Shown here: positions 2,880 to 32,400 of the stretch, in pieces
Layout: each line of letters begins with the position of its first letter
Position numbering within the stretch: position 1 is the stretch's first letter
Assembly (NCBI GenBank): GCA_002269645.1
Contig: NIVC01001234.1
Location: 124,001 to 188,000 of the forward strand
Source of the DNA: Macrostomum lignano
Lineage: Eukaryota
DNA: 64,000 nucleotides
Direction of reading: 5' to 3'
Program-made: the position numbers and the translations under genes
Notes under the pieces: model-generated
Told to the model about the DNA's origin: nothing
The model's database searches: none
Seen by the model: only the letters and a program-made list of their open reading frames with translations

Positions 2880-3070
2880 GTCCCCGTGTGACACCAACAC
2901 CATCAAGTGTGACTGTTACACTAAAGTTCCCGTGTAACACCGACACCATACAGTGTGATTGTAACACTAAAGTTCCCGTGTAACACCAACACCATACAGT
3001 GTGACTGTAACACTAAAGTTCCCGTGTAACAGCGACACCATAAGTGTGGTTGTAACACCAAAGTCCCTGT
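2880..3070. repeat. ~45-bp tandem repeat (tgtaacactaaagttcccgtgtaacaccgacaccatacagtgtga) x3-4
   Basis: 'cactaaagttccc' recurs at about 2920, 2965 and 3011. Confidence 0.85.
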
Positions 3071-4460: not shown

Positions 4461-4464
4461 CTCC

Positions 4465-10100: not shown

Positions 10101-10717
10101 GTCTAGGGTTCGGTCACTCACCGACCAGTGAGTTTCCACTCCAGACTGACTGTCTAGAACTCCAGGCCTAAGGTTCGGTCACTCACCGACCAGTGAGTTT
10201 CCACTCCAGACTGACTGTCTAGAACTCCAGGTCTAGGGTTCGGTCACTCACCGACCAGTGAGTTTCCACTCCAGACTGACTGTCTAGAACTCCAGGTCTA
10301 GGATTCGGTCACTTACTGAGACTAAATGAGTCAGCAGTTCGATGAAGGCTGGCAGCAGGGTGGGGTCGGGTTTCTTGACGGCCATTACCCGCCTGGGCAG
10401 ACTGTCGGCCCACTTCAGCAGGTGGTTGTCCAGCTTGCTGTCCTTCAGACCCCTGGCAACGGATGGAGTTGAGATCAAAACTCAACGAGCACCCAATGAC
10501 ATTTTCAACAAGCCTTTGCCAGAATTATCAACAATATTTCCTAGCTTAAATCATCACTGTAAACCAGAACGGTCTGATTAGGCCAAAGCACTCACCGTTG
10601 AAAGTAGGGCTTCCACCGAAGTGTTATGCTGCTCCTCGCGTGCTCCCACTGTCCCTCCTCATCCTCCCCGCCGCCGCTGCAGGTGTTAGGCACGTGAACT
10701 CGGCCGTTGCAATTCAT
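7138..10717 (-). CDS. NADK: NAD+ kinase, 5 coding exons (10717-10596, 10452-10317, 8840-8442, 7925-7668, 7356-7138), ~377 aa
   Basis: NADK motifs are present: IGGDGSLLYAS, VLNEVVIDRG, GDGLIVSSPTGSTAYAMAAG, WVSFDGR and WNVR. LLKW..PRRVMAVKKPD resembles the animal NADK N-lobe. All introns are GT-AG with compatible phases. The start codon and exon 1 are less certain. Confidence 0.92.
7440..7610. repeat. 34-bp tandem repeat x5 in NADK intron 4
   Basis: gatggcagctaaactggcactcattattctgagt is repeated. Confidence 0.9.
8128..8425 (-). mobile_element. tRNA-derived CORE-SINE copy 1 (NADK intron 3)
   Basis: The reverse complement has an A-box/B-box head (gcagcctactggtgagagcg...ggttcgattt) and the core 'gtgtccttgagcaagacacttaactctgcattgcttcagttcacccagctgtaaaatggg', shared with four other copies here. 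Confidence 0.85.
8925..9170. repeat. 22-bp minisatellite (ttccccttgattatctgaggta) x~11 in NADK intron 2
   Basis: 'aggta' recurs at 9001, 9023 and 9045. Confidence 0.92.
10066..10316. repeat. 65-bp tandem repeat x~3.8 that includes the NADK exon 2 splice donor
   Basis: 'ccactccaga' at 10071, 10136, 10201 and 10266. On the - strand the real donor GTAAGT (10316) is echoed by GTGAGT at 10251, 10186 and 10121. Confidence 0.9.
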
Positions 10718-11809
10718 GGCTTCCTGGCAGGCTCAAGCAGTTCAACTGCTACTCAAAGTAATTTTCAATGGAGTTGTTGACTTCACAAAGTGCGAGGCAA
10801 GCAGGCGCTTAATAAATGCATGGGGCTTCTCAACTCCGACTCCACCCTGTGCTGCAGGCCTTTATGTCCAGCGGTTGGTTGGTGCAGCGCCAACCTTTGT
10901 ACGGTGTCAATTGGCTGCAATTTCAACAGCAGCAATAATGAGCCAATTAAAAGACTCTCAACTAAGGTAAGTATTTTTACTTTGCTATTTTACTTTTTTA
11001 TCAGAGAAACTACCATAAGTACTATATAAAGGATATGTAAATGCAAGTATATTCTGAATAGAGTTAAAAGTCAAGAGCACACAGACCAAACATTTTTCAA
11101 ATGCTAAGTCATCCCACTTTGGTCTCTCTCTCTCTCTCTCTCTTTTTGGGCCCTCTAATGGCCACTTAGACATCCTTAGGATTGACTTGATGATTACTGA
11201 GACAGGCTAAGCTAAAATAGTTTCATCTTATTAAAATAGGGATTGGTCAACATTTTTACCTTGAGTGTAAAAACAGGTAAGATTTTGTCCTGCCTGCACC
11301 TTTTGCTCGCGTTGGATAACAAAGAATTGAGCTCAAAGCACAGTATTTCTGGGCCCAGGCTGCTGCAGTCTATAGCCCAGCCAAGGCAATGGCCATTGCC
11401 TTTGGGCCCGAAGATGCAGGCGAGAGAAAATTAAAGCGAGTGCCTCCAGTGTTTTATATAAAAAGGAGAGACAGTGAAGAACATGCACGTGGGAATGAAA
11501 AGCTACATAGAATAAAATGCATTCTATGCAGCTCATATTGAGGGCCAGATAAAAAATCTAGCTAATGGCTATAGAACATGAAAAAAGAAAGGGAAGAAAG
11601 AGAGAAAATAGGAAAAAGATAAGAGATGGGATGGGATATAGGATAAGAAATAAATGAGAGAAGCTGAAAGAAGAAAAGAAAAAGGGAGAAAGCAAGTAAG
11701 AGAATTAAGAAAAAAACCATGAGCAGGCTAGATTATTATTATAAAGTTTCAAAGGACCTATAGGCTAGATAAAGTGATTTCATGGCCCATGTTTGGCTTA
11801 TAGACTACT

Positions 11810-12300
11810 AGAGTTTACCAAGATAGGTGTACCGCTTGAAGCGTGCGAGCCTGGTCGTCTGTCCGTCTGCACCGCGGCACGTCAGGTCCGCTGGGATGTC
11901 GGCCGGCACAGTCAGCACCTCGGTCTTCAGAGTGTTGACGATTAGACCGACGCTCGAGCCTGTCGATCTGGCGCTGGGCGCCTTCAACGGACGAGGACAG
12001 GAGGGCAAGGTCGTCGGCGTAGCCTAGCACGCTAAGGCGCTTTTCGCCGTGGTGGCGACCGATGCGTCTGCGCAGCAGGAAGCCGTCGTCAGCCGAGACG
12101 AGTGCGGTCCGAAGCACCCAGTCCAGCAGCAGCACGAAGAGAAACGGCGCCAGCGTGTCGCCCTGCAGAACAGGCTCAGAACAGGGTCGGACAGGCCGTC
12201 CGCCGTCACCACAGCAGCTCGAGGGTCGCAATACAGCGCCATGACAGCGCCGACTAGCTGCTGGGGTACCCGGTAGGCTCGTAGGACAAGGGAAGCGCGG
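11810..12300 (-). mobile_element. Non-LTR retrotransposon (RTE-like LINE) reverse transcriptase fragment, degenerate
   Basis: VLQGDTLAPFLFVLLLD (RT motif B'), LGYADDLALL (catalytic YADD), VGLIVNTLKTEVL and YTYLG; frames are broken. Confidence 0.85.
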
Positions 12301-13115
12301 CTCTCATCACCGTGCATCGTGCACCGTGCACCGTGCACCGTGCTCTCAACACACTGCAAATAAATGCAGTTCCTTGAATTACCATTTTGACAACACAGCT
12401 GTTACTTCCAGTGGTCCTGGAAGTATCAACTATATTGCTTTTTTCAGTGACTGGGAACTGGAAATCTTGCCCCCTTGGAAAGTACTCTGATATGTCTGAT
12501 ACGTCTGATATGTACAATGACAAGTGAGTGTTAAGTTGTCTCTCTGGATTGAAAATCCCTCCCCCCACAGATTGAAAACCACGGCCTATATGCCAATGCA
12601 CCCATTCGTCGGTGGTTTTACAAGCGGTCCTGACTTTAATCGTCGAATATCTAAGGTTACGTATTTAGTCGTATTTAGTCAATCCCTAGGGTTGTTGGAG
12701 CGATAAACTATACGAAAATCCTCAATCCTCAAATCCTCACTACCCAGTTAGCGAAAAATTAGTTAGATAATAAAAAGAGTTCAGGGACTAATTTAGTGCG
12801 AGAGTTCCACGCGTTCTACTCTACTCATATTCCCCTCCCTCTATGCATTCGTTAATTCATAACGAATAAGGTGGCTTGACACCTTAGGTGGTCTGATAGA
12901 CCTCAGCCTGTCTAACCTTGTGCAGGCCGTGGGAGTGCGAGATACATGTACAAGTAAACAATAGTTTCTGTGGAGCGCATATATCAGGAGCGCGCATTCA
13001 GTGCCTTAGCTGCTACCCAGAGGTAGGTATATTAGACATACAGGCTGAACAATGCGAGCTACCAGGGCTCATTCATTTTACTCACCACTTATTTTCAGTC
13101 TCGTCAATTCTTCAA

Positions 13116-14207
13116 ATGCAGCTGGTTGCTTTCACTTGGAGGATTCTCTCCCTGACACTGATAGTCGATGGCAGCTACGGGACCAACATCACATTCGGTA
13201 AGCTTAGTGTTTCGAGCTCCGCTGCAGCTTGTAAGAAATTCGAGTAGAAAATGCAAAAACACATTGGTCTCAAATGCACTTAATTTCTCCGCGATTCAAT
13301 AGCTGGTACAGCTGGGTGCCAGCATTAGCTGGGGTAATTGAGGGTGTGCGTGGCGACCCCCAGTTCCTGGACTGAACAGCCGTACGCAGCCTTCAGATGC
13401 GCCGCGCAATAGCTGCAGTTGAGCTGCCGGCTCTCCATCTGCCCATTGGGATCAGGTGTAATCGATTTTTATATTTTCATTGACATTAAATTTAGCTCAT
13501 AATTGCTGGTTCTTGAAATAAATTTCACTCATTCATCTTCGTAACAGACGCTCTCGAGCTAGATTTGCTATGTTTCAGCTTGTCTGTCTACAGATTGCAG
13601 ACTGGCTGATTCTATCCCGTAGACACAATGTAGGAATTGGTTTAAGATCCTTTACACACCGAACCAGTTGGAATCAGTGGAGATGTTTCTGCAGCGGGAC
13701 AATAGTTACGGCGCGTTCGACCAGAGAAAGGGTTGGAGCGGCACTGTGGCATCATCAACCACCTGGTGGCTACTGGAGAGCGAGATCGGCTATTTGAGAA
13801 GTGAGTTTAAACCGAGTCTGGTAGCATTAATTCACAGTTTTCCAAAAAATGCATGCCATTTCAGGTACTTCAACCCTCCCAAGAGCGAGCTGCCTAACTG
13901 CACCGATAAGCCTTTTCCTTACGCTCTCAACAACTGGATACCCCAAGAACCGAATATTTTCAACACTCGCCACGGTGCTCTTACCCTCAGCAACACTCTG
14001 GGGATCGCCGTCATCAACTTGGCTGGCTGTCTGCTCACTCTGCTGCTGGCATTGCTGGAGAAGGCCTGCATCAACCTCAGGCCGCGTTTGAATCAGTTAA
14101 GAGGCAACGCGTTAAAGGACTGGCGACGATACAGGGCTGGGACTGGTGAAGCTGTGCAAACAGCTGCCAAAAATCAGACAGAAGAGAAGATGGAGTCATA
14201 CGTCTAA
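13116..14207 (+). pseudogene. psiC: internally deleted copy of iGluR-like gene C (exon 1, fused exon 8/9 remnant, exon 10)
   Basis: Exon 1 (13116-13197, MQLVAFTWRILSLTLIVDGSYGTNITF) matches C. Exons 2-7 are absent. At 13743-13749 the sequence jumps from the C 26286 equivalent to C 27161 (~874-bp deletion removing M1-M3). The last exon is nearly identical to C. Confidence 0.88.
13314..13490 (+). mobile_element. 5'-truncated CORE-SINE copy 2 (3' half)
   Basis: 'tgggtgccagcattagctggggtaattgagggtgtg...cagccttcagatgcgccgcgcaatagctg' matches 36600-36750. Confidence 0.85.
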
Positions 14208-14949
14208 CGCTTGAATTTTCACTTCTTCCATTATGAAGTTCAATGATTAATAAATCTGTAAATATTTGATTCACAGTTTATTCTTTTATACGAAAAACGA
14301 CAAGAAAAGATGGTTACTTATTAATCATGTGACTCATTGATTAAGCTGCTGAGGATGTCATGATCCCAGCTGGCTCAATTCAACTCAGATAATTTATTCG
14401 TTTAGTTGGACAATCCGACAATAATACTTTACCGAGGCTTTATCATTGACCCATTCTATTGTGAAAAGCTTTCTTAAGTTCCGAATCTTTCGCGAGCTCC
14501 AACTTACGCACAAGATTTAAGGATCGTCTCAGAGTTCTTTAGTGCGTTCGGTGAAACTTTCGCCATGGCTTACAACTATGATCTAGTAAACTCGGTCAGC
14601 CAATCCAGTTAGTCCTCATCCCGTAAAGGTTTCGCTCCACTGTCCCAAATGAAGTAACACGGAATGCGAACTTACTGTACTGTCATTTGGCTCGCGTTGC
14701 CCAAGGAAGTGCACAATTGGGACGTTTCTGATGCTAATTTTTGTATCAATAAAGCGTTTTTAAATAGACAGTAACCGCGCATATTTCTGAATGATGGCAG
14801 ATTTACGACGGAACTTAAGAAGACGCTTTGACTTACAAAAGATTCACCGAACGAAAATTTACGCCCACGGCAAAAAAACCATACGATCACTTCACCAAAA
14901 AATGTACGCCACAGTCTAATAACGCATATACTAATACTTACGCAGGCGC

Positions 14950-15760
14950 ACACGCACACGCACAGTGTGTACAGAGATATTGATTTTTTGGTCTGCAGGG
15001 TTTTGTTGTGCGTGCTGCGTCAGTAGGGTTTCCCCACCCCGGCCTTTTTCTCTCTCTCTCTCTCTCTTTCTCTTTGTGCCTCCGCCTCTCGCGCTGGGTT
15101 GGGCCGGTCGGTCGGGCTGGGGTTTGTGGGCTTAAGCCTCACCCTAGTCTGGCCGGCGGCCAGCTCAGGGCCGGTCTTGTGCGCGGGCCGGATCAGTCGC
15201 CCCACCCTTCCCGGCGGCTGGTGATTGGCTGGCCGGTTGGGTGAGGTGTACTGGCTGGGTCTGTGGGCTTGCCCCTCCCCCCTTTTTGTGCTATTTATAC
15301 GTGCGCCCCGCCCCACCCCGTCCCGGGCCCTCCCCCTAACCTCGCTGGCGGCTGTGTAGAAGAGTCCAAATAAACGCGATCGCGGTACGCTGAGGCATTC
15401 ACTGCGTTGTTGAATCTGCTCGAACCAAGTGTGAGTCTTCTTTTTTCTCTGGGGTGCCGCGCTGGGACTCGAACCTTTCTGGGACCGGCAGGTGAACCTT
15501 CGCCAGCCAAGTCATTCCGTGAACTCTCGCAGCACATCTAGGGCCGGTCTGGTGAACTTTCGTCGGCCGGGCCGTGGTGAACTCTCGCCGCGTTAGGGGC
15601 AATAAGCGGGACCTGGGTGTCTCCCAGCAAGGTAGCCCAGCCAACCTAGCCGGATTACAGCCGGGCAACCCCAGGGGGGCACAACAGTTGCATATGTATA
15701 CAGGACGGATTGGGGAATTGAACCTACGAACTTTGGCAAAAAAATCAGGTGCGCAACCGC
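14950..15760. other. GC-rich unclassified segment absent from the second duplicate copy; possible LTR-like or non-autonomous element remnant
   Basis: No counterpart at 28980-29160. Contains TATAAATA plus a GC box (- strand, 15293-15315), AATAAA (15369), a tRNA-3'-end-like string at 15450-15475 and four GTGAACYYTCGY motifs. Confidence 0.35.
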
Positions 15761-16663
15761 TTCGCTACTAATTCGCGGTAGTGATGCTGATTAATAAATA
15801 TTGATCGAATGGTTTGGCAAGTCTGGCGTTCAGCCAGTCAGGATCGAGTATCAGTTTGAAAATTAATCCGCATCAATGCTGAGCTGTCATTTAAGCCCAA
15901 AACAGCACTTGCTCAATAATCATACGTTTAGTATCCACCCAATCAAATAGGTCGATATCCATCCAATGCTTGAGATGACATCTATGCAAATCTGCGCTCT
16001 ATGCAAATTTCTAAGCAGAATAAACATGGGCGTGTATGCAAAGACTGAATGAAAAATTACCCTGTTTAAAAGGGGAAACCATAAGCCAGGCTCGGCCTTG
16101 GGTCCTTGGGTCTGGGGTTGGATGCGCCGCCAACTGGGCGGGAGTGGGTGTCTGTGGGGGGGGCATTTTTAGCCCCTGCGACCACCTCGCTCTGTCCCGC
16201 TTCGCTGGCTTGCGTGCGTTTTTTCTGCTTTTAGTCACCCCCTTACTTGCAGTCTCTGCAATTTCTATTTTCTTTTCACTTTCGTTTATATTTTACTTTT
16301 CAAAATCGCTTACATTAGCAAATATACTGGTGTTTCGTATGTTGCCCATACAGGGCGTTAGGATGCTTTTCGTGCTCTGCAAGTGTTGTCTTCTGCTCTC
16401 TCCCTCAGGCCGATCCGTCAATGTAAATTTAACTTTCTACTCTTTGCCTCGAGCGCGCTCGTTTGTTTAGAGCGCTTTCAAGCTCACAACTCATTGCCAA
16501 GCAAGTTGCCAAACTTTGAGATCATTGGCGAAGCGGGTCGTGATGCCTTCAAAGATATCTAAGGGTATTCGGAAATCTAGGGCATGTTTACATATACGAG
16601 TATATGTAAGGCGATACGAAACTTGAAACTCACTAAAATTGAAGCTTCCCAGACAGCGCAACT

Positions 16664-19600
16664 ATGCGACATCTTACTGTTTTGCAGCTGGGCTTTCTCA
16701 TTCTGATTGCAGGCTGTAGCGGAACGCAGGCTCAGAGCAACAACATCACACTGGGTTCGTTCAATTTTGTCTACTGAGAACTCGCTTTTGTCCAATTCTA
16801 TTTTCATTTGCAGACATGCAGATTTTGTGCTTCTAATGATTTCCTTTCAGCCCTATTGTGGAATGAAGAGGGCACAGCCGCACTGGCGAAGGACTTATTC
16901 GAAAAGAAGTTCCGACCGGCAATTCTCGAGGCCTGCCCGTCTGCCCCCGGCATCAATCAAACTTCCGTTGAGTTTGTGGAGATCATTCACAACAAGCTTA
17001 TGGATATCCCGTCTGCTATGACCAGTAAGAAGCATTTATTGCTTTTATTAATCTCTAAAATTTCTAAGGCTATAATAGAAAACATCTACGAACCCATGAT
17101 GTTACTCGGTTAGAATGCGTTGAGATATGAGATGATGATAGTGCGTACCTTCGTCAGTTTACCTGTCAGGTAAAAAAAATTTAAGAAGGCGACGGTAACT
17201 GCCGAATTAATTTAAATATGAGCGACGTCGAACCTCATCGATGCAAGTTCGATACAATGTTAATCGATGGACTCAATTAATTCGAGTAGGCATAAATTTA
17301 AACTTAGATAAAAAATTATTCTCCAAACTCAGACTTTGCCAGCCTAAGCAACTGCTTGTTCATCGGTGCCCACACTGAAGTATCGATGGTGCCGCTGTTT
17401 GCTCAGGCAAACTTGTCGACCGGCCTGACCCCGGGCTCTGTTGCTGCCCGCCGCTATCCCCGCATGCGGCTGCACAAGGTGGCACCGATCCCAGTATCGC
17501 TGGTCTCGGACGGAGTGTTGCGATCGCTTGTAATGTCTCTTGGCGCCAGCGAAGCAAAGCAAAGCCGCCTCAGCATCATTCTTGGCACCGGCTACGAAGC
17601 ATTTCATGTTGAAATTTTTGCTACAAAGTTTCCAGGCTCAGTGCAGCTCTACCGGCTTAAGCCGGGTGCAGAATACGACCTTATTACAAGGCTCCAATTT
17701 AAAACGACCGAAACCTTTCTGCTCGCATGCAAACCAGAAGAAGCCGAGGTTTTCCTTTCTGTGGCCTTCATAAATCGGCTTCTGCAACCAACTTATCGTT
17801 GGTTTCTGTTCAACATGGTGAGGCTAGATACTTTGTCTAGAAACAGTTTTCATATGTAAGGTACTGTATTTTTGAGTAGGAAAAAATAGTAGGGAAAATG
17901 GAAGACGAGTAATACCCGTAGTGCATTTCTATGATAGGAACTAAATAGACAGCTTAAATCTGTTTGAAAAAACTATATTACTCGTACATTACGCATTTTG
18001 TACGCATATTAGATTGACCTTGTATTTGTAGCTCCTGGTAGAGAGAAACAACTTCGGCGGCTACGTGATTGTGTCCAAGAATATCACATCAATGGAGTTC
18101 GGCCCAATATCCACTGCTATCAAAAACGGCCTAACTACGACGCGATCAGTTTACCTGTTTGATCTCTTGACTGTTTGGTCAGTTTACTTAAAAAACATTC
18201 TTTGTAACGAGGTGAGAGGTCACATTCGAGTTGTGCGAAATTTTATTAAGCTTTTTATGTCATTCAAAGCTTTAAAGTAATGGGATCATTAATAAATAGT
18301 TGTCATTAAATAAATTCACTCAAAGAAACACATTCGCAATGCAGATTGACTGAAGAGATGCATGAAGCTGTAAATATAGGCTTTTTTCTATTGTGCTTCA
18401 ATAGCATTGTTATTCATCACGAATAGTTTCTTCACTTACTTTAGGCATCCGAAGTGAACAGAACTGTTGAAGGCCTGACCGGTTCTTTTAGCTTGGGCCC
18501 GGACGGCACGGTAACCAGGAAATTCTGGCGGATGCACTTTTACAAAGGACTCGGCGATCAGCGTGAACGGGTGAGGCCTCCATTGTTGCAGTGTTTTCTA
18601 ATCGTGTCAAACTTGTTGCGATTTTGTTTTTCTACGAGATCCTCTTTGAAATTGTACCCCAGCTCGGATATCGTGCTGGGATTTCTGACGCTTATCAATT
18701 TCAAAATGAATTTCGAAAAACATATCACTCTCCCTAAGATCGGCAACTGGTCCAGTTCTGGAGACTTCTTCTTCGTCCCGGCAAAGCCGAGAATACCGAC
18801 TGATGAGGTGTTGAAGCAAGAGCTCAACTTGAACGTGTTCCGAGTAGTTACTGTACTGGTGGGTTTTCCAGAAACAGTTAACTCTTCCTTCAACAACTAG
18901 TTGAAGACGCTGCATAATTTCTCATCTAACAAAACTACTTCTTCATTTCAGTCACCTCCCTTTGTGCAGTTCAGAAAGGGCTACGAGAATCGGACTGACG
19001 TACCGCTCTACAACCGCCTAGAAGGGTTTGCTGTGGACATGTGCAAGAAGATACTGATGAACACGTCGGTAAGTTTAAACTTAGACTTATCTGTGAACAG
19101 TTTAAACTTAGACTTATCTGGAAACTCTACTTTACCGTTTTTGTGTAAAGGGTTTTAAACAGATTTTTTAGCGGCCGAAATATTTTAGTACATAAGTTGC
19201 ACTGCTTTGAAGCAACACTAGACTACTGCATTTAGCTCGTAGATGTAAATAGGCCGGTTGTCACTATTCTAATCACAGATGTTCCTCACTTCTTGAAATA
19301 AAAAAACATCAGATAATTATGTTGAAGAGAGAAAATAGCAAAAAACCGTCAAAGATTCAAAGACGATAGGAGATGCGTCAGCTAGCTAATCAACTTGCAT
19401 AATCTGCAATAATCGCTTTATATTCGTGAGTAGTTCTTGCTGGTAAGAAACAACTGACCCATTTCCCCGTTTTCCATAGCTAAACTCCGTTGAATTCTTT
19501 CTACAACCTGATGGTATCTTCGGCTCCTACGATCCAGTCAAAGGATGGAGTGGCATGGTAGCCACTCTCATGCTAAATGATGCCGACATGGCCTGCGCTT

Positions 19601-21168
19601 CAATGTCCGACACGGAGCTGCGCCGTGGCGTTGTCAAATTTACGCAGCCCATCTTATTCAACCAACTGTCAATCCTGTACTCGAAGCCAGAGGTCAATCC
19701 AGTTGAGCTACTATTTGAGTTTCTCTCTCCGCTACACCTGTACACCTGGCTGGCCTTGCTCGGCTCCGGCTTCGCGTCGGGGCTGGTGCTGGCGGTGCTG
19801 CATCGAATTAGCAGGAACGAACAACGGCTCAGCTTGTACGAAGCCATCTACGTCGCATTGGGCACGATGATCCAGGGCGTGAAGACAACGACACCGGATC
19901 GTCCGTCTGCAAAGCTGGTGAGAAAAAAACTGTAGAAAATAAAGTGCACCATTTCTAACAAGCGCCAATGCTGTAGGCGGCACGCACTCCTACACACACT
20001 CAAAAAGGATTTACAGCGGCCCAGACTTTTCAATTTTCAGACATGTAGCTCGCACACTGTCTGTGCTTTGGGGGGTGGTCCTCATGGGTATGAATCGCAC
20101 GGAACATTTGCAATTTTCGCGAAAAGCCGTAAATGAATGTGGCCAAACATGGAATCCAACCAGGGTTCGTAGCGCGAGGGTCAGGGGCCGTACCGCTGAG
20201 CTTCTCTGCCTCCGAACAGTAGTTAATATTAGAGTAAATTTCTTTCTCGCATTCGATTTTGGCAGGTGACAGTGGTTTTCTGGTTGTTTGTGTTCCTCTT
20301 CTTGATTATCTATGTGTCCAACTATGCAGTCAAGCGGACCCTGAAGCACATCCAAACGGAGATCAGGGGGCTGGAAAGCTTGCAAATACAGGAGGCGTAT
20401 GAATACTGTACGCTGTACGACTCTGTGTACTTGGGCTTCATGAAGAGCTCAATTGATCCGCTGGTGTCAGCAGCCTACCAGTACATCGCCGACAACCCGG
20501 AGCGCACTCAGCCGCGGAACATCAGCCAGGCACTCAGCCTCGTCAATACTGGCGAATTCGCCTTCCTCTATAGCAACGTTTTGAATGAGTACTACGCTAA
20601 GATGGGTTGTGGCCTTAAAGTAGTGGGCAGCTTCGGACAAGAAACGATGAATTTGGGTCTACCAAGCAGTATAGAATATGATGATTTGATCAATAAGATC
20701 ATTGACCGACTTATCAGCAGTGGAGAGCGAGACCAGCTCTACAAAAAGTGAGTCGAATTCGCCTTTATTGAAGACGGAGACAGCTCAGGATAAAATCAGT
20801 ACATAAAATCAGAGTTACCTTTTTATAAATTCCTTGCTTGCAGGTACGCAAATCCGCCCGAAAGCGATCTGCCTGACTGCACGAACAAGACTCTACCGTA
20901 CGCCATTCGCGATTGGATTCCAAAAGAGTCTGAAAACGTTGGCACCCGACGAAGCGCTGTGAACCTCAACCACACACTCGGAATTACGATTATTAATTTG
21001 GTCGGCTGTCTGCTGACTCTACTGTTGGCTGCCCTGGAGTTGGCCTTTCAAACCTACAGGCAGCGACTGCGCAGGCTTCGGGATGACATGTTGAAGGACC
21101 TGAGCCTCCGCATGGAGTCTGCCAATGCAGCCGCAGCTGGCGATGATCTGATGGAGTCAAACGTTTAA
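16664..21168 (+). CDS. Divergent ionotropic glutamate receptor / IR-like gene B, 10 exons (16664-16754, 16851-17024, 17333-17817, 18032-18211, 18445-18570, 18739-18858, 18952-19068, 19480-19917, 20266-20747, 20844-21168)
   Basis: Signal peptide MRHLTVLQLGFLILIAGCSGTQA; ATD-length N-terminus; S1 PPFV...EGFAVD...WSGMVATL...ADMA...FTQP; M1; pore loop ALGTMIQG; M3 FWLF...IYVSNYAVKR; S2 with two cysteines; M4. Splice phases join in frame. Confidence 0.88.
20060..20225 (-). mobile_element. Degenerate tRNA-like (SINE head) insertion in intron 8 of B; also in B' at ~32770-32930
   Basis: The - strand reads 'gctcagcggta...cctggttggattcc' (A/B-box-like). Intron 8 is ~350 bp in B and B' versus ~90 bp in C and D. 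Confidence 0.45.
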
Positions 21169-22182
21169 TCCGTGTTGTATCGGACTGCAGTTTGATACGT
21201 CAGTTGAAAACAATTATCAAACTGTGTCAGCGGTGGAGGGAAAACAAAAGTTGATTGATTGAAAAAACTTTTCATCATATTTAATTTCAATCAATCAACT
21301 CTCTTTAACAACTTTTGAATATTTACTCAGTCTATAATCAGCGTCCTTCAAAAGAATAACACATAGGACGTATCTGTACATGGGTACAATGAGATGTAAG
21401 CATCGTTAACTAAACTGGGAGTCAATCCCTACATATATAATTCCGGCAACAAGATGTCCAGTCGTGAGGCTCGAGTTAATTTTTCCAAAGGCGCAGCACG
21501 GAGAGCACGAGGAGCTTAGCTGATCTCAGTTCATCCAACAATATTCAGAGACCTACGGAGTGTCAGAACGTGGCAGGTCAGCAGACACTCAACTGTGGTT
21601 GTCTCTGAACTGTTTGATCTAGCCATAAATTGCGCTATTCTTAGCACCTTCATCTGATTGGACTTTTCAGAGATGACCTGCAATTTAACCAGCTCGTATT
21701 CGTATTCTTTCATTCCTCCACCCCGGGAACAGCGGCAGGCACAAATATTTTCTATGCCTCATTTTTCGGCTAAAAAGTTAATTTCGAACGATACCAATCA
21801 GCAAAGTACGGTAAATCAGCATTTAGAATTCCAACTTCTGCTCCTGAAAAACATTATACCATTACGAGCGTATACGAGCTACTTTGTTCCAATTTTTTTA
21901 AATTATGAAATATTCAATGTAATACGGTCAGGTATTTTTCAGAAAACAAGATTTGAGAAAAGTACTGGCTGACAAAAGCGTTTTGTCTCGGTTTTGAAAA
22001 TATGAGCTCTGAGTCGCAGTCGAATTGTGTATGGACATTAGTACTAAATTCTCTCTTGTGTGCACAGGAATTGCTCTGACAAGCACTAAAATGAAGGACT
22101 GAACTTAAGCCTCAGAGAGATCAACATTGCAACAGGCTCCATTTATTTAGCTACACTGAAATTTCTTTGTCCCGCTTGAATT

Positions 22183-22258
22183 ATGCTGTCTCTAATCATC
22201 GTGCTGCTGCTTCTCTGCAGCAATGGAATTCGCGTCAGGGAAGAAAACTTCACTTTAG
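22183..22258 (+). other. Orphan signal-peptide exon homologous to exon 1 of gene D (MLSLIIVLLLLCSNGIRVREENFTL|gtaag)
   Basis: About 80% match to 35243-35318. ATG and the phase-1 GT donor are intact. Homology to D intron 1 ends near 22500. Confidence 0.8.
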
Positions 22259-23154
22259 GTAAGACGAATTAAAGAATCAATATGCGCTCGTAGTTTACGA
22301 ACAGATTAATTATCTGAAGAAAATAAACTGCTAATCGATTTTCCCTTCAGGCATCAGTTTCAGTTGCAATAATAAAACTTAAACTTAAACTAAAAAACTT
22401 AAAAAGCAAAAACAAAAAATGATAATCCAATTTTTTTTTCTTTAGAAGCACTGCTTGAAGAGGGGGGGATTTATTGAGCGTACTTGCCTCAAGCTGGCCC
22501 GGTGTACACCCAGCGGTGAAGAGTTTAAGAGTGGTTATCAGTCATTCAAAAACTCCCACTTCTAGACAATGGGGAACAAGTTCCCTAGGTATTATGCAAA
22601 ATCAAATAACTCTTACTGGAGCGGCTCCTCTTGTAACTTGTTAGCAGGCTGGCCTTGTGTGGTAGAGACGACTGGCTTCAGTGAATTGTCTCCGGGGGTC
22701 CCTAACTTTATCTGTGGGTCGACAAAAATCGACAGCGAATCAGAAGTCTTTACAGTGTCCTCGAGCTCGGAATTAACAATAGAACGTGCGCCCTTAATGA
22801 GCAATTGAATTCTCTGAGTTTCTGCAATACTCAGCCAGAACCTTGTGCAGGCCGTGGGAGTGTGAGATACATACACAAGTATCTATACAGTGCCACCCTT
22901 CTGATATAAAACTGCTTGATAAATCCGTCACTCAGCTTGGATTCAAACCCCGTCTTAAATGCATGCCTGTAATTTCAGTCGCAGCGGGGGTGAACAGCTT
23001 CTGGAGCGTATGTCAGGCGTATTCAGCGTCTTAGCCGCTGCCCAGCCTGCAGAACACCGCAGAGGTAAGTATATTAGACTCACAGGCTCGACAGTACCGT
23101 GCATGGCTCATTCATTTAACTCACCACTTATTTTGAGTCTCGTCAATTCTTCAA

Positions 23155-26100
23155 ATGCAGCTGGTTGCTTTCACTTGGAGGATTCTCTCCCTGACACTGA
23201 TAGTCGATGGCAGCTACGGGACCAACATCACATTCGGTAGGCTTGGTACCGGAGTGCTGAGCTCTGGGAACTAACTAACTTATCTTGTGTATTGTAAGTG
23301 CACCGTTACATGCACACCAATTTCTCTCATTCTCTTCGCTCTAACTGGCCATACCCCAAAGCTTCCATGTCCATAGTAATTGTCATCACGTGACTGGGGA
23401 ACTTAGAGAAAGCCAATGCGAAATCACAGCAGAAATCACAAAATACAAGGAAGTTCGATTCACTCGTTTAATTCCCAGATATTTCCCATATCCTTAGTTG
23501 ATACAAGGACAACTTAATATATGTTACTTGAGTAGTCCTTGAGTTGATAGTCGCTCGTATGCGGCATACCGAGTTACTCTATATGTTGCTCGCAATCTCG
23601 GGTTCACCCACTGAATTCTGGCCCATGATTGTCAACCCATGGTTTACTCATATGTGAGTGTAAATCAGCTTTATTTGCCTCCTGACCGAAATTCAGCGAA
23701 ATTGACGACATTTCAAAAGTATTTTTGCAACCACGCTTTTTATACACTATTAATTATATAAGACTTCCACAAAGTCAGAAGGCCGGTAAGCAAATGTCAG
23801 GAAAATAAACAAAAACTGAAAAAAAATAAACAACTCAATCAAATCGCAAAAGTCAAATGAATCGCACAAACTACTCAACACTTGCTTTCAGCGCTACTGT
23901 GGAACGCAGGCGGCTCGGCTGCAATCGCTAATGAGCTCTTTGAGACCAAATTTTGGCCGGCCATTATGGAAGCCTGTCCGTCTGCTCCTGGCATTAATGA
24001 CACTTTTATCGATTTTGTTGAAATTGTTCAAACGACGTTAATAAATATTCCGATGGTTTTAGAAAGTACGTGGCGTAAGAAGGCATTTAATACTTGCACT
24101 TAAAATTAGCTTTGAATTTGCACCAAGCAAGATTGAATGCTGGCATTTAAATTTTTAAATAATATGACCAAAATAGATTTATTAACTTAATTTTGGCTCG
24201 ATTAATCGCCTCATTTTTATTTGACTCGGCATTCTTTTAATTGTTCAGACATCTCCAGTCTCGGCAACTGCTTGTTCATCGGTGCCCACGCAGACGTATC
24301 GACGGTACCGCTGTTTGCTCAGGCCAACCTGTCGACCGGCCTGACGCCGGACTCTATCGCTGGTCGCCGCTACCCCCGCATGCGGCTGCTCGAGGTTGCG
24401 CCGATACCAATGCCGCTGGTCTCGGAGGTCATGTCGCGAGCACTCACGCTGTCTCTGGGCTCCGGCCTGGCCGAGGGCAGTCGGCTTAGCATCATTCTCG
24501 GAAGCGGTTACGAAATATCTCATTTTAAACTACTGGTTGTAAATTTTCCCGGCTCGGTAAAATTTTATCGACTTGTGCCAGGCGCAGAGCAGGAGCTGGT
24601 CAGCGTACTTCAGTTGGATCTGGCGAAGAACTTTCTTGTTGCGGCTAAGCATGTCGAAACAGATGCATTTATGGCAGCCGCGTTCAGTGGTCAGCTGTTG
24701 AATCCATCGCATCGCTGGTTCCTGTTCGATACGGTGAGAATGGATTGCTGCTTCTAGATAGCTAGGTGACATCAATAAGTAACGATTGTCTGTTCCCATA
24801 TTTAGTTCAGTTTAGTTTAATTAGATAGTTTTTCAGGCGATTTGAGTACTGCCGAAAATCAATGTGACAGTCAACCCGCAGACAGCGAAGAGAGAAACAG
24901 TTATGGCCAGTCCACTGACCCCTGAACTCGGAAGGCACACACTTACACGGGGTGTACAACGGCCCTGACTTTCTCATCGTCAATCATGTAACACATTGTG
25001 TATTGGGGGTTGGCCCCAATGGGCTAGAATCACACAAGTCCTAGGCCATTTTTTGCATTTACCCCAAAGGAAAACGAAAATGGTGACTTTGCCAACATGC
25101 ATCCAGAATGCGACCTAATGAGCAACAGGGAAAATCATATTTTTCTTACAGCTATTAGTCCAGAAAAATAACTTTGACGGCTTTAAAGTAATTTCAAAGA
25201 ACATCACGTCAATGGACTTCGGCCCAATATCCTCGCTCATCAGCAATGGTCTAAACTCAACGCAAGCCGTTTATCTGTTCGATCTTCTATCGATTTGGTC
25301 GGTGTATTTAAAGAATTTTTTTTGTAACGAAGTAAGAGTTTTTTTAGTTTTTAATTTGTTTCTCCGAGCAAAGTTTTTAACTCATAGTTACGATGCATTA
25401 TAATTTTCTCATCTAAGCCGACAGAAGTGAACACAACATTCACGGGAATGACCGGTTCGTACGATTTAGCTCCTGACGGAACTGTCTCCAGACAGAACTG
25501 GTTCATGTACTTTTACAAAGGCCTCGGCGAACAGCGAGAACGGGTCAGACGCACTTTGATTTTTTCATTCGCAATATTCTGAATAATTTTTATCACATAA
25601 AAGTGCTTAACAGGCATGAGAATACAAACCATTTTTATCCAAACCCAAAGATCGGCAATTGGTCAAGCGCTGGAGAGTTTCACTTTCAGCCGGCCTTGGT
25701 CAGAACTACAACAGATGAAATGCTGAAGCGGGAGCTAAACTTAAACGTGTTTAGAGTGGTCACCGTATTAGTACGTAGATTCTTAGTACAGCTCTTTTCA
25801 TAATTTGAATTCGAGAGTATATACTTCACATATCTCGCCGTGATTTCCCGTTTCAGTCCAAACCGTACGTTCAGTTTAAGAAGGGCTACGAGAACCGGAC
25901 CAACGTTAGTCTCTTCGATCGCTTAGAAGGATTTGCCATAGACATGTGCAAGAAGATCCTGGAAAACATGTCGGCAAGTAGCAATATCGGTGTATATTGG
26001 GATTTTTATGTTTTACACGCATTTGTAATTAGCTCTTAGTGCTGGGTTTCGAAATAAATGAAACTTCGTGACGGAAGGTTCTCGAGTTTCATGTGCTATG

Positions 26101-27619
26101 TTACAGCTGGTCTGTCTGTAGATTCTGCAAACTGGCTGCTTTCCATCCCGTAGACACAATGATAGGAGTTAATTCAAGATCCTTTACTCGTACACACCAA
26201 ACCAGTTGGAATCAGTGGAGATGTTTCTGCAACCGGACAATAGTTACGGCTCGTTCGACCAGAGAAAGGGCTGGAGCGGCATGGTGGCCACGCTCATGCA
26301 AGGCGGGGCAGGCCTGGCCTGTGCGCCGATGTCCGACACAGAGGAGCGCCTCAGCGTCATGAAGTTCACGCAGCCGATCAAATCCTACCAACTGTCTATT
26401 CTGTACGCCAAGCCGGAGGCCAACCCGGTGAAGCTTATGTTCGAGTTCCTCTCGCCGCTGCATCTGTACACCTGGCTTGCACTGATAGGCTCAGTTCTGG
26501 TCTCCGCCTTGGTTCTGGCTGTTTTGCATCAGCTCAGCAGGAACGAGCACAGTTTTAGCCTATACGAAACGGTCTTCATTTCCTTCGCTTCGCTGATCCA
26601 AGGCTTGACTGGCGTCACGCCAAATCGACCGTCGGCCCAGTTAGTGAGTACTCAGACGGTTGCAGTTTTAAATGAGAAAGCGATCATTTTCATTCCCATT
26701 GTTCTTACGGGTTACTTAATTCATTCTTAGGTCACAGCGGTGTACTGGCTGTTTGCTTTTGTAATCTTAGTCGCCTACGTGACAAACTATGCCGCAAAGA
26801 GGACTTTGGAACGAGTCCAGTCGGAAATCACGGATTTAGACAGCCTCCCTGTGCAGGAAACCTACGAATACGGTACTTTTTTCGGCTCTGTCTACCTAAG
26901 CCTCTTGAAAGGCTCCAACGATCCTGTCCAGCAGGCGGCCTTCAGCTACATCAGCAACAATCCGGAGCGCAGGCAGCCGCGGAGCGTTAGCCAGGCTCTG
27001 AGCATGGTCAGCGGCGGCAAGTTCGCTCTTATTTACAACTCCGTCATGAACGACTACAATGCCAAAATGACGTGCAACTTTCATGTCGTCGGCAACTTCG
27101 GACTGGACAGTGCGATGTTGGGTCTGCCGGAGAGTGCCGAATATGACGATCTGATCAACCGCATCATCAACCACCTGGTGGCTACTGGAGAGCGAGATCG
27201 GCTATTTGAGAAGTGAGTTTAAACCGAGTCTGGTAGCATTAATTCACAGTTTTCAAAAAAACGCATGCCATTTCAGGTACTTCAACCCTCCCAAGAGCGA
27301 GCTGCCTAACTGCACCGATAAGCCTTTTCCTTACGCTCTCAACAACTGGATACCCCAAGAACCGAATATTTTCAACACTCGCCACGGTGCTCTTACCCTC
27401 AGCAACACTCTGGGGATCGCCGTCATCAACTTGGCTGGCTGTCTGCTTACTCTGCTGCTGGCATTGTTGGAGAAGGCCTGCATCAACCTCAGGCCGCGTT
27501 TGAATCAGTTAAAAGGCAACGCGTTAAAGGACTGGCGACGACACAGGGCTGGGACTGGTGAAGCTGTGCAAACAGCTGCAAAGAATCAGACAGAAGAGAT
27601 GATTGAATCATATGCGTAA
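23155..27619 (+). CDS. Divergent iGluR/IR-like gene C, 10 exons (first 23155-23236; 23892-24065; 24249-24733; 25152-25331; ...; 26206-26643; 26731-27211; last 27276-27619); intron 7 has a GC donor
   Basis: Same exon architecture as B; pore FASLIQG; M3 AYVTNYAAKR; no stop or frameshift seen in the spliced frame. Confidence 0.88.
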
Positions 27620-29458
27620 CTTTTGAATTTGCACTTTTTCCTTTATAAAGTGCAATCACGAACGAATCTGTAAACATTTTAGTCCCAATTTATTTGTTCT
27701 ATGCAAAAACGATAAGAAAATATGATTGATAAGTGATCATGAGACTCATTGTTTAAGCTGCTGAGGATGCCATAATCCCAGCTGGCTCGATCCAGATAAT
27801 ATAATTGATTTGTTAAGTTCGGAAGTGATGTAATCGTACGCTCGTACTTTGCTGGTGATAAGCGTAAATTTTAATGCAATGTCATTTTGATATATTCAAT
27901 ACCTTCTTTTTGAACATTTAATCGATTCTACGAGCATACAAGTGCAAATGGTTATCGTTTTTTTAAATAAATGCAGAATACAGCAAAAAATGTTGGAACT
28001 GCAATTAAGTGGCGCTTTATTATCGACCGATTTTTAATGAGTGGCATGGCAACCCGCGCCTGCCCTGTCCGATACTGAATAATTCTGACACTTTGACTCT
28101 TGCGTCAGTGTTACAGCTTCGCGTACTCTTGGTTTTATCATTGAGCCGTTCTATTGTATTAAAATTTCTTAAGTTCCTTACCTTTTTGCAAGTTAAAACT
28201 TACAAACGAGAGTTAAGAATTGTCTCAGAGTTCTTTAGAGTGTTCGGTGAAACTTTTGGCATTGTGACCCAACGTTATCTTTACTGACTACGTTCTGCCA
28301 GCGGAAGAGCGTATGATCGTGTCAGACCGCTGTCCGGACTGACCTGGGAACCTGAGCGAATGCTTCGCTTCAAGTAGCTCAGTTTCTCGTAGCCCGTCCT
28401 GTGAGTTCTCGTCTCGTATAATCTCGGTCCACGGTCGCAAAGAAAGTAACCCGGAGTGCGAACTTACTGTACTGTCACATGGCACGAGGGAGAGAGGGCG
28501 TCGGTGGTCTTGGTACAGTCGTGCTATTGCCACTCCATTTTCTGAATATGCTTGCCTGAGGCTGCTCACTATAGCAAACCCAAAATCAATAAAGCGAAGA
28601 TAGTAAACCTAAAATATTGTAGAAGCCTCAAGTTCATGCTGTACGCTGGTAGGGGACGACATAGGACGGGCTGACCGAGTGGCTCGGTCTGACGTGAACA
28701 TACGTTCGTACGCTAAAAGAGCAGAGCCTTGCTTCAATTTTGCATTCGCACAGCATGCGTCAAACGCGTCGCAACTGAGCCAAGTTTTCTCGGTCCTGCG
28801 CTTTCTGCATTAGGCATGCAGCTGTCTCAGAATAATTGTGATGTTTCTGATGCTCGAATTTTTATAGAATTAAGGCGTAAATTTTTTATTTAATATACAG
28901 TATTAGTCGCGCATATTTCTGCATGATGGCAGTGTCGCATAACTTCACCGAAATATTTTACACCAAAGTAGAAACGCAAGCTTTATTGAACGGGCCTAAT
29001 GTCCTCCACTTGGTAATTTTCCTGGTTCAGAAATAGTGGTCGCGTCAGCTGATTGCAAGTGGGGTAGCCATTGTGCGGTTTTAAGGTTGGTCTCGAATTT
29101 ATCTGGTTAGTTATGACTTGCTTTGGTACTCTTATAAGTCCGCAGTCCCTCTAATGTAAATTGCTAAACAGAATAAACACGGGCGTGTAAGCAAACATGG
29201 AAAGACAAATTCCCTGCGTTTGATGGGAAACCGTAAGACAGACTCGGTCGGTCCAGCGTTATTGCAAATTTAACTAACTTTCTACTCTGCCTCGAGTGCG
29301 CTATACTGTTTAGAGCGCTTTCAAGCGCACAGCTCATGGCCAAACAAGTTGCCAAATTTGGGGCATGTTATCATATATAAGATATTTTTATGCACCTCCA
29401 GAGAGGTGATTCGCAACTTGAAACTCACTAAAATTGAAACTGTTCAGACAGTGCAACG

Positions 29459-32400
29459 ATGCGAAATCTTACTGTTCTGCAGCTGAGCTTTTTGATTCTG
29501 ATTGCAGGCTGCAGCAGAATGCAGGCTCAGAGCAACAACATCACACTGGGTTCGTTCAATTTTGTCTACTGAGAACTCGCTTTTGTCCAATTCTATTTTC
29601 ATTTGCAGACATGCAGATTTTGTGCTTCTAATGATTTCCTTTCAGCCCTATTGTGGAATGAAGAGGGCACAGCCGCACTGGCGAAGGACTTATTCGAAAA
29701 GAAGTTCCGACCGGCAATTCTCGAGGCCTGCCCGTCTGCCCCCGGCATCAATCAAACTTCCGTTGAGTTTGTGGAGATCATTCACAAAAAGCTTATGGAC
29801 ATCCCGGCTGCTATGAACAGTAGGAAGCATTTATTGCTTTGATTAATCTTTAATGAATCAAAAGCAATCATTAAGTTATATGCACCCATGAATCTACTGG
29901 GATTGAATTCGATTCGATAAGATAGAAACAATACGTACCTGCAACCTCGGTAGTTTACCTGCCAGATAAACTACAAATTCTTAAGAAGGCGACGGTAACT
30001 GGCGAATCCATTGAGTAAGAGCGTCGCACCTCATCGATGCAAGTTCGATGCATAAATTATTAATTGTTAATCGATTGACTCAATTAATTCGAGTGAGCAT
30101 AATTTTTTCCGGCCTAAAACACATCTCTAAAAATTTATTCCCCCAACTCAGACTTTGCCAGCCTTGCCAACTGCTTGTTCATCGGTGCCCACACTGAAGT
30201 ATCGATGGTGCCGCTGTTTGCTCAGGCCAACTTGTCGACCGGCCTGACCCGGGCTCTGTTGCTGCCCGCCGCTATCCCGCATGCGGCTGCACAAGGTGGC
30301 GCCGATCCCAGTATCGCTGGTCTCGGACGGAGTGTTGCGATCGCTTGTAATGTCTCTTGGCGCCAGCGAAGCAAAGCAAAGCCGCCTCAGCATCATTCTT
30401 GGCACCGGCTACGAAGCATTTCATGTTGAAATTTTTGCTACAAAGTTTCCAGGCTCAGTGCAGCTCTACCGGCTTAAGCCGGGTGCAGAATACGACCTCA
30501 TTGAAAGGCTCCAATCAAAAAATGCCGAAACCTTTCTGCTTGCATGCAATCCAGAGGAAGCCGAGGTTTTCCTTTCTGCGGCATTCATAAATCGGCTTCT
30601 GCATCCAACTTATCGTTGGTTTCTGTTCAACATGGTGAGGCTGGAATCGACCAGATACAACTTTCATGTGATTAAGGTACTGTATTTTTGAGTAGCCAAA
30701 ATTAAGGACCTATGACAGCTGTTGTCTTTTTAGCTCCTGGTAGAGAGAAACAACTTCGGTGGCTACGTGATTGTGTCCAAGAATATCACATCAATGGAGT
30801 TCGGCCCAATATCCACTGCTATCAAAAACGGCCTAACTACGACGCGATCAGTTTACCTGTTTGATCTCTTGACTGTTTGGTCAGTTTACTTAAAAAACAT
30901 TCTTTGTAACGAGGTGAGAGGTCACATTCGAGTTGTGCGAAATTTTATTAAGCTTTTTATGTCATTCAAAGCTTTAAAGTAATGGGATCATTAATAAATA
31001 GTTGTCATTAAATAAATTCACTCAAAGAAACGTTCGCAATGCAGATTGACTGAAGAGATGCATGAAGCTATAAATATAGGCTTTTTTCTACTGTGCTTCA
31101 ATAGCATTGCTATTCATCACGAATAGTTTCTTCACTTACTTTAGGCATCCGAAGTGAACAGAACTGTTGAAGGCCTGACCGGTTCTTTTAGCTTGGGCCC
31201 GGACGGCACGGTAACCAGGAAATTCTGGCGGATGCACTTTTACAAAGGACTCGGCGATCAGCGTGAACGGGTGAGGCCTCCAATGTTGCAGTGTTTTCTA
31301 ATCGTGTCAAACTTGTTGCGATTTTGTTTTTCTACGAGATCCTCTTTGAAATTGTACCCCAGCTCGGATATCGTGCTGGGATATCTGACGCTTATCAATT
31401 TCAAAATGAATTTCGAAAAAAATGTCACTTTCCCTAAGATCGGCAACTGGTCCAGTTCTGGAGACTTCTTCTTCGTCCCGGCAAAGCCGAGAATACCGAC
31501 TGATGAGGTGTTGAAGCAAGAGCTCAACTTGAACGTGTTCCGAGTAGTTACTGTACTGGTGGGTTTTCCAGAAACAGTTAACTCTTCCTTCAACAACTAG
31601 TTGAAGACGCTGCATAATTTCTCATCTAACAAAACTACTTCTTCATTTCAGTCACCTCCGTTTGTGCAGTTCAGAAAGGGCTACGAGAATCGGACTGACG
31701 TACCGCTCTACAACCGCCTAGAAGGGTTTGCGGTGGACATGTGCAAGAAGATACTGATGAACATGTCGGTAAGTTTAAACTTAGACTTATCTGTGAACAG
31801 TTTAAACTTAGACTTATCTGGAAACTCTACTTTACCGTTTTTGTGTAAAGGGTTTTAAACAGATTTTTTAGCGGCTGAAATATTTTAGTACATAAGTTGC
31901 ACTGCTTTGAAGCAACACTAGACTACTGCATTTAGCTCGTAGATGTAAATAGGCCGGTTGTCACTATTCTAATCACAGATGTTCCTCACTTCTTGAAATA
32001 AAAAAACATCAGATAATTATGTTGAAGAGAGAAAATAGCAAAAAGCCGTCAAAGATTCAAAGACGATAGGAGATGCGTCAGCTAGCTAATCAACTTGCAT
32101 AATCTGCAATAATCGCTTTGTATTCGTGAGTAGTTCTTGCTGGTAAGAAACAACTGACCCCTTTCACCGTTTTCCGTAGCTGAACTCCGTTGAATTCTTT
32201 CTACAACCTGATGGTATCTTCGGCTCCTACGATCCAGTCAAAGGATGGAGTGGCATGGTAGCCACTCTCATGCTAAATGATGCCGACATGGCCTGCGCTT
32301 CAATGTCCGACACGGAGCTGCGCCGTGGCGTTGTCAAATTTACGCAGCCCATCTTATTCAACCAACTGTCCATCCTGTACTCGAAGCCAGAGGTCAATCC

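Follow-up and report, generated by a model that had tools for sequence, protein, structure and literature searches.

The gate of ionotropic glutamate receptors (iGluRs) lies in the motif SYTANLAAF of the third membrane segment (M3). In GluA2, the gate constriction is formed by the side chains of T617, A621, T625 and M629, with A618 as the gating hinge; the methyl groups of T617 point toward the pore centre when the channel is closed, and its hydroxyls line the pore when it is open (PMC9068512). Perampanel binds GluA2 in a pocket built from Y616, N619, L620, F623 and L624 together with P512, S516, F517, D519 and P520 of pre-M1, and in this "extracellular collar" it hinders gating movements in the manner of a wedge (PMC10584687). 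We analysed a tandem array of iGluR-family genes in a window of 64,000 nucleotides from the flatworm Macrostomum lignano (GenBank assembly GCA_002269645.1, contig NIVC01001234.1, positions 124,001 to 188,000 of the forward strand), for which an earlier note, made from the letters alone, had described a remodelled M3 gate. The array comprises copies A, B, C, B' and D on the plus strand and copy E on the minus strand. Motif positions are counted from the Ser of SYTANLAAF, so that GluA2 T617 is position 3, the Lurcher site is position 8 and L624, directly after the motif, is position 10.

Departures from this motif have been described in other receptors. In GluD2, A654T/D (position 8) and L656V (position 10) produced large constitutive currents and T649A (position 3) small ones, whereas T649M, a hydrophobic replacement at position 3, produced no constitutive current (PMC10840383). 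Drosophila IR76b naturally carries Thr at the Lurcher position and, as summarised in a review that cites Zhang 2013 (PMC7882480), is reported to be a constitutively open Na+ channel that is attenuated by a T-to-A change. The ligand-binding domains (LBDs) of protostome ionotropic receptors (IRs) lack some or all of the glutamate-contacting residues (Croset 2010, PMC2924276). Among iGluRs proper, SYTANLAAF is less conserved, with unknown functional meaning, in Lambda (sponge) and some Phi receptors; Ramos-Vicente et al. 2018 noted lower conservation only in these lineages, and excluded sequences with fewer than four of the nine motif residues (PMC6307864). These low-motif lineages come from phyla other than flatworms.

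Copy B of the array, whose M3 exon begins at base 20266 directly after a ...TGGCAG acceptor, was laid out as follows.

16838-21168, plus strand: copy B, nine coding exons and a stop codon, GT-AG introns, no internal stop
16838-17024, 17333-17817, 18032-18211, 18445-18570, 18739-18858, 18952-19068, 19480-19917, 20266-20747 and 20844-21165, plus strand: the coding exons of B
19708-19731, plus strand: pre-M1 segment LLFEFLSP, with Glu at the GluA2 S516 equivalent and Ser at the D519 equivalent
19867-19878, plus strand: pore-loop MIQG, with Gln at the Q/R site, followed by VKT
20266-20340, plus strand: M3 helix, translation VTVVFWLFVFLFLIIYVSNYAVKRT
20308-20334, plus strand: motif IYVSNYAVK, with Arg10 at 20335-20337
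20563-20592, plus strand: S2 segment FLYSNVLNEY, with Ser for the alpha-amino-binding Glu705 of GluA2

We searched the PDB with copy D by phmmer, and the best matches were GluA2 (5l1b_A, E = 1e-35) and GluK3 (E = 7e-35). The alignment of D with GluA2 was ungapped from the start of M3 through YGT at maximal posterior confidence and placed IYVTHYAAK over SYTANLAAF, a register shared by W, F, Y2, N5, A7, T11, L, Q and YGT as anchors. The concern raised in the earlier note, that a proper alignment might shift these residues away from the gate, was thus rejected. The motifs that it had listed were recovered at the mapped coordinates, namely IYVSNYAVK (B and B'), AYVTNYAAK (C), IYVTHYAAK (D) and AFAANLAGQ (E), with Val (B, B') or Gly (E) at the Lurcher site, Val (Ala in E) at the T617 equivalent, His for the motif Asn in D, and a retained pore-loop Gln (MIQG in B; LIQG in C, B' and D; LFQ/G across the exon junction in E). 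Of the nine residues of SYTANLAAF, B, B' and D each kept three and C and E four; position 3 deviated in all window copies, and position 6 was Tyr in the four plus-strand copies and Leu in E.

Compared with AMPA and kainate receptors (GluA2, GluK2), the flatworm proteins shared the Pfam domains, the order N-terminal domain-S1-M1-M2-M3-S2-M4, the Gln of the Q/R site, the Arg485 equivalent, the LBD disulfide cysteines, N619 and A621. In contrast, only three or four of the nine motif residues were kept in the window, with the replacements T617V, A618S/T, L620Y, F623K and L624R. B, C and D each had nine exons at shared intron positions, stop-free inside and with a terminal stop, when the proteins were threaded onto the DNA. 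Between these three paralogues, the ratio of nonsynonymous to synonymous substitution rates (dN/dS) was 0.06-0.15 in the S1-M1-M2 exon and 0.12-0.19 in the M3-S2 exon, with synonymous sites near saturation, and across the 30 M3 codons the proportion of nonsynonymous differences (pN 0.15-0.20) was lower than that of synonymous differences (pS 0.56-0.81). B, C and D are under purifying selection.

The relatives of these proteins were then considered. A word-index protein search with copy D returned three matches, and the closest matches of the window proteins were all from M. lignano: P0001 ("hypothetical protein BOX15_Mlig034115g2"), P0002 (a UniProt model) and P0003, a paralogue with 47% identity. 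A profile of the B-type protein, C, D and P0003 was searched exhaustively with HMMER against 1.84 billion representative proteins; a few M. lignano groups scored 448-1464 bits, and everything else scored at most 226 bits. M3 and pore columns were taken from the 150 best matches, of which 136 carried the canonical motif. Within these 136, Y2, T3 and A4 were present in all (136/136), N5 in 133, L6 in 128, A8 in 131 and L10 in 135. The window-like exceptions among the 150 were the M. lignano groups and three sequences, two of them from tapeworms (Taenia, Hydatigera). Proteins of Echinococcus, Mesocestoides and Anoplocephala, each with AFCANYA(A/S)YR, came from a second search. The M. lignano paralogues read AYVTNYAATR (P0003), TYIANYAAFR (P0005), AYVGNYAAMR (P0006) and SYVANYAVFR (P0007). 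A trematode protein with canonical SYTANLAAFLT was also among the matches, so flatworms keep canonical receptors too.

The clade consensus was x(Y/F)(V/I/C)xNYA(A/V/S)xR in place of SYTANLAAFLT. Position 3 was V/I/C, Tyr6 was found in 16/16 sequences and Arg10 in 14/16, N5 and A7 were retained, and A8 was mostly retained. In GluA2 numbering, T617V/I/C, L620Y and L624R define the clade, while N619 and A621 are kept and T625 and the Lurcher Ala622 usually are. Val occupied the Lurcher site only in B, B' and P0007 (Gly in E), with Ala in C, D, P0003, P0005 and P0006; about half of the tapeworm sequences had Ala there and the remainder Ser. Lys9 (F623K), Ser/Thr at hinge position 4 (A618S/T) and loss of the acid at the E705 equivalent were confined to the B/C/D subclade. 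B, C and D also carried an acidic residue at the pre-M1 equivalent of GluA2 S516, which was mostly Gln elsewhere in the clade, and this acidic residue occurred only alongside Lys9.

Neighbour-joining trees of the LBD and transmembrane-domain (LBD-TMD) columns of the 150 best matches recovered the flatworm clade in 100/100 bootstraps, and in 98/100 after the 30 M3 columns had been removed. The clade formed an isolated long branch with 23-28% LBD-TMD identity to every canonical match. The nearest canonical sequences by identity were kainate and AMPA receptors, and the best PDB and named matches were likewise AMPA and kainate receptors, members of the AKDF (AMPA/kainate/delta/phi) group. These results indicate that B, C and D belong to a flatworm-only iGluR branch, composed of M. 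lignano paralogue groups and tapeworm proteins, and that the rewritten gate is an old, selected trait of the clade and not a peculiarity of the window copies. An old and selected trait is not in itself evidence of leaky channels; its presence across the clade under purifying selection argues for a compensated working design and not for a destabilised gate.

No earlier description of this clade or of its motif was found in the literature searched, the coverage of which was incomplete. Flatworms are not mentioned in the main text of Croset 2010 (PMC2924276), the words flatworm and Platyhelminth are absent from the main text of Ramos-Vicente et al. 2018 (PMC6307864), and flatworm receptors are not discussed in a 2025 placozoan paper or a 2026 ligand-selectivity paper. 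The branch has probably been overlooked by large surveys because these drop sequences with fewer than four of nine motif residues: at 3/9, B, B' and D fall below the limit of at least 4/9 applied by Ramos-Vicente et al. 2018, and C and E stand exactly at it.

We next assessed the fold and the ligand site. Copy D matched Pfam Lig_chan (PF00060) at 42.4 bits (cut-off 30.8, E = 7.8e-11) and Lig_chan-Glu_bd (PF10613) at 74.7 bits (cut-off 30, E = 8e-21); no Pfam ANF_receptor match was obtained in the N-terminal domain. An AlphaFold2 model of the B-type protein P0001, built on an alignment of 99 sequences that were mostly canonical iGluRs, reached a predicted local distance difference test score (pLDDT) of 85.1 and a predicted template modelling score (pTM) of 0.73 and showed M3 as one continuous helix (residues 532-567), and a model from 12 clade sequences (pLDDT 37.7, pTM 0.23) was left unused. 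Foldseek matched the P0001 model to full-length GluA2 and GluK2 chains with E down to 6e-39 and template modelling scores up to 0.65 over about 735-860 columns. The model thus predicts the three-layer fold of an N-terminal domain, a clamshell LBD and an M1-M2-M3-M4 channel.

In the LBD of B, C and D, Arg485 was kept, whereas Ser654/Thr655 were replaced by Val/Tyr and Glu705 by Ser (B) or Asn (C, D), which leaves incomplete the binding triad expected of glutamate-gated iGluRs. The E705 equivalent was Asp in P0003, P0005, P0006 and P0007 and Glu in the Taenia, Echinococcus and Mesocestoides proteins. These residues suggest that B, C and D probably respond to something other than glutamate or any other canonically bound alpha-amino acid. 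In this divergence of the LBD, B, C and D resemble the IRs; tuning IRs and IR76b differ from the flatworm proteins in having no full-length N-terminal domain (PMC7882480).

When the M3 residues were mapped on GluA2, changes on the pore-lining face of the clade were conservative (Thr to Val, Ala kept, Thr mostly kept, Met to Ile/Val/Leu), and those on the collar face were radical (Leu to Tyr, Phe to Lys, Leu to Arg). The KR pair was therefore read as a change of coupling or collar and not as a ring in the ion path. The earlier note had been right that KR stands where FL is expected in B, C and D, but the KR ring that it proposed is unlikely to line the pore, as L620, F623 and L624 of GluA2 line the collar pocket; by analogy with GluA2, a coupling change is more likely than a permeation ring. 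Taken together, its residue-level statements all stood, and its functional reading, of leak-prone or differently permeating channels, found little support. Three points that it had left out, the loss of the acid four residues after the Q/R site (Q/R+4), Lys at +3 in B and D, and the loss of E705, would bear more directly on permeation and ligand.

We consider it probable that these genes represent a flatworm-only iGluR branch in which the gate motif was stably replaced in working subunits and remodelling of the collar face retuned gating. In this reading, B, C and D would assemble into functional, tetrameric ligand-gated channels of the ordinary three-layer build, and the gate would still close as a hydrophobic M3 bundle crossing, with Val isosteric for Thr and Ala621 and Thr625 kept. 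The main remodelling would lie in the extracellular collar, on the side of M3 facing pre-M1 and M4, and this side would couple movement of the LBD to gate opening; the pre-M1 equivalents of S516 and D519 in B would, by analogy, be the collar-pocket partners of M3 positions 6, 9 and 10. A contact between Lys623 and Glu/Asp516 is possible in B, C and D. The rewrite would most likely retune the energetics and coupling of gating, and a charged ring in the permeation path is less likely. All copies and P0003 end in ES-x-V/A/L (MESNV, MESQA, IESYA, MESVA, DESIL), which looks like a class I PDZ-binding type. C-termini of this type are found in many synaptic iGluRs, and here they may indicate anchoring by PDZ scaffolds.

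Several points weigh against this reading. The evidence for the clade members consists of sequence comparison and a predicted fold, and the side-chain orientation was transferred from GluA2 to a protein of about 20% identity, so that Arg10 or Lys9 may instead snorkel into the outer vestibule. The pairing of Lys9 with an acidic residue at 516 represents a single evolutionary event. The tree was a neighbour-joining tree of the 150 best matches, in which long-branch attraction may have drawn the Macrostomum and tapeworm groups together, and no planarian or trematode member of the clade was present among the matches listed. The models of B, C and D comprise nine coding exons and begin downstream of the signal-peptide exon. 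Finally, variants at positions 3, 8 and 10 of GluD2 are known to gain function, which makes altered basal activity a live possibility.

An alternative that takes up this last point is that the rewritten gate destabilises the closed state, leaving B and B', and perhaps the whole Arg10 clade, tonically open or leak-prone. The flatworm substitutions fall on the same positions 3, 8 and 10 as the GluD2 Lurcher and GRID2 variants (PMC10840383). By our own reasoning, the Val of B and B' would be an isostere of the Thr that the Lurcher mutation introduces, and IR76b, the leak channel reported in the review cited above (PMC7882480), shares with B and B' a natural residue other than Ala at this site. 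The loss of canonical ligand-binding residues in B, C and D would also suit a channel that needs no agonist. Against this, C, D and most of the clade retain Ala at the Lurcher site, and at position 10 the GluD2 variant has Val where the clade has Arg. Val for T617 preserves the hydrophobic seal and removes the open-pore hydroxyl (PMC9068512), which if anything disfavours conduction, and the silent GluD2 T649M mutant points the same way. Moreover, the GluD2 variants are single pathogenic mutations in a canonical background, and such effects do not transfer to a background of about 20% identity, in which the changes are ancient, combined and under purifying selection, with time for compensation in pre-M1 and M4, both of which have also changed. 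We therefore regard leak as unlikely, though it is the best placed of the alternatives.

A second alternative is that the pore was re-charged, with loss of the Q/R+4 acid, Lys/Arg at +3 and Arg10 (plus Lys9) altering selectivity; its variants include lower Ca2+ permeability, loss of polyamine block, weak cation conduction and even anion permeation. The acid at Q/R+4 was missing throughout the clade, and Lys or Arg occurred at +3 in B, D and the tapeworm proteins, giving the loops QGVKT (B, D), QGLTG (C) and QGVRT (tapeworms) without the acid seen in the QQGCD or QGSTD of canonical relatives. The +4 acid contributes with the Q/R/N site to polyamine binding and block (PMC12226733). Arg10, too, is nearly clade-wide. 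On the other side, the Gln of the Q/R site, which aligns to GluA2 Q586 in a re-entrant pore loop, is kept, and positions 9 and 10 belong in GluA2 to the collar pocket and not to the lumen. We know of no anion-selective iGluR, which also counts against a re-charged pore. Altered selectivity of this kind appears more doubtful than leak.

A third possibility is that these receptors do not conduct and serve as ligand sensors or trans-synaptic organisers, so that the gate motif drifted once ion flow was not needed. Such a role has been proposed for wild-type GluD. The rewriting of the most conserved gating motif, the Ser/Thr at the hinge Ala618 in B, C and D and the PDZ-ligand-like C-termini, which suggest scaffolding, would agree with it. 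But GluD, the model for such a role, has the canonical motif, and M1-M2-M3 is strongly constrained, as the dN/dS of the pore exon indicates. The new motif is conserved from Macrostomum to tapeworms, which drift would not yield, and the proteins keep the pore Gln, Asn619, Ala621 and the M3 Trp/Phe. We hold a non-conducting function to be improbable, below either of the two preceding accounts.

The copies of the array differ in their state of preservation. B, C and D are intact, A is a relic without a pore, B' is a young, frame-broken duplicate of B, and E is a likely pseudogene.

13537-14410, plus strand: copy A, relic of a C-like copy in which the first part of S1 is joined to the M4 exon; also carried by the public contig
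23879-27619, plus strand: copy C, nine exons; M3 exon 26731-27212; motif AYVTNYAAK plus Arg at 26773-26802
29678-33879, plus strand: copy B'; M3 exon from 32977; motif IYVSNYAVK plus Arg at 33019-33048
36232-40559, plus strand: copy D, nine exons; M3 exon 39548-40029; motif IYVTHYAAK plus Arg at 39590-39619
42179-52000, minus strand: copy E, divergent; M1-M2 exon ending at 46791 (..LFQ, then gt); M3 exon from 44408
44327-44298, minus strand: motif AFAANLAGQ plus Arg of copy E
21151-21165 (B, plus strand), 27616 (C, plus strand), 40556 (D, plus strand) and 42179 (E, minus strand): C-terminal ends

About 870 bp of A, including M1-M2-M3-S2, have been deleted, and its entire N-terminal part is gone as well. 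In B', 1-bp deletions in two C-runs (30249-30251 and 30276-30278) disrupt the N-terminal-domain exon, and the public gene model P0002 has the same out-of-frame stretch. In E, the frame breaks in a G-run (44267-44270), 30 nt past the motif, and both the LBD Arg and the conserved M3 Trp are absent. The word-index protein search found no annotated close relative of E; its nearest relatives were the Mlig022707 group (motif AYVGNYAAMR), which was closer than the P0094-like group, so that membership of the latter was rejected. E has probably become a pseudogene, with Leu6 as a secondary change, and its motif accordingly says little about gating. A degenerate fragment of a long terminal repeat (LTR) retrotransposon lies on the plus strand at about 44600-46650, inside the M2/M3 intron of E, with a zinc-knuckle gag-like open reading frame (ORF), a reverse-transcriptase-like ORF and a Pfam RT_RNaseH match.

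Three smaller features of the intact copies were recorded. In B, the highly conserved Gly of YGT after M3 is replaced by Cys (TGT at 20407-20409; YEYCTL); B', C, D and P0001 have Gly. Intron 6 of C (25974) is GC-AG, and every other modelled intron is GT-AG. A signal-peptide exon of D is possible near 35243. A broken last exon in B, suspected from the ORF list, was rejected, since this exon is identical in B and B' and splices normally.

Pseudogene drift or assembly error is very unlikely as the source of the odd motifs. The state of A, B' and E and the Cys of B speak for decay. On the other side, each of the three frame breaks sits in a homopolymer run, where long-read assembly may have erred, and the motif recurs in tapeworms and in public M. 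lignano proteins that are independent of the window. The complete stop-free models and low dN/dS of B, C and D also reject the claim that all copies are pseudogenes. Decay is the case for A, the probable state of E and a possible one for B', but it does not account for the motif as such.

The locus itself was compared with public sequence. Window positions 5620-24677 were collinear, at 95-99% identity, with the public M. lignano contig NIVC01000941.1, which encodes P0001, and copy B was 97% identical at the DNA level to the locus encoding P0001. The window therefore represents the P0001 locus of M. lignano from a different assembly, haplotype or homeologue. The public contig carries about 4.3 kb between B and C (14905-19265) that the window lacks (21928-21936), a structural difference between the two versions. 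Within the array, a recent segmental duplication of 12.7 kb relates [A-B] to [C-B']: 18020-21694 (B) and 30722-34404 (B') share 97.9% DNA identity, and 13537-14410 (A) pairs with 26064-27823 on the C side. Between B and D, the synonymous divergence (dS) was 0.39 in the S1-M1-M2 exon (19480-19917 vs 39019-39456) and 1.37 in the M3-S2 exons, and this contrast suggests gene conversion among paralogues.

The window is eukaryotic DNA with short introns. Collinearity with the public contig places a NAD kinase gene at about 7140-10730 on the minus strand; the gene called on that contig matches Pfam NAD_kinase. Many minisatellite arrays, with periods from 4 to 159 bp, occur at 810-5947, 7426-10313, 48466-49648, 51082-52879, 54588-56736 and 63685-64000, among them 19-bp CT-rich arrays in the introns of E that give rise to long spurious Arg/Glu-rich ORFs and a strong strand skew. 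A Pfam scan of the other large ORFs of the window returned only retroelement RNase H and low-complexity noise.

What appears to be new is a branch of iGluRs specific to flatworms, in which gate and collar follow an alternative motif that has been conserved. SYTANLAAF serves as the yardstick for iGluR gating, its T617 and A618 were invariant in 136/136 canonical relatives here, and single changes at positions 3, 8 and 10 lead to human and mouse disease through constitutive current. A lineage with V/I/C3, Tyr6 and Arg10 is thus a natural experiment on which features of the gate are required, and it may show how the M3/pre-M1 collar, the perampanel-type drug site, can be rebuilt. The clade is present in tapeworms that infect people and livestock, where a divergent collar pocket could matter pharmacologically. 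A bolder interpretation, to which we give little credence, is that the lineage with Arg in M3 is naturally tonic, in the manner of Lurcher or IR76b, or has non-standard selectivity, and answers to a ligand that is not an amino acid; if true, tonic or non-standard channels of this kind would represent a second natural solution to iGluR gating.

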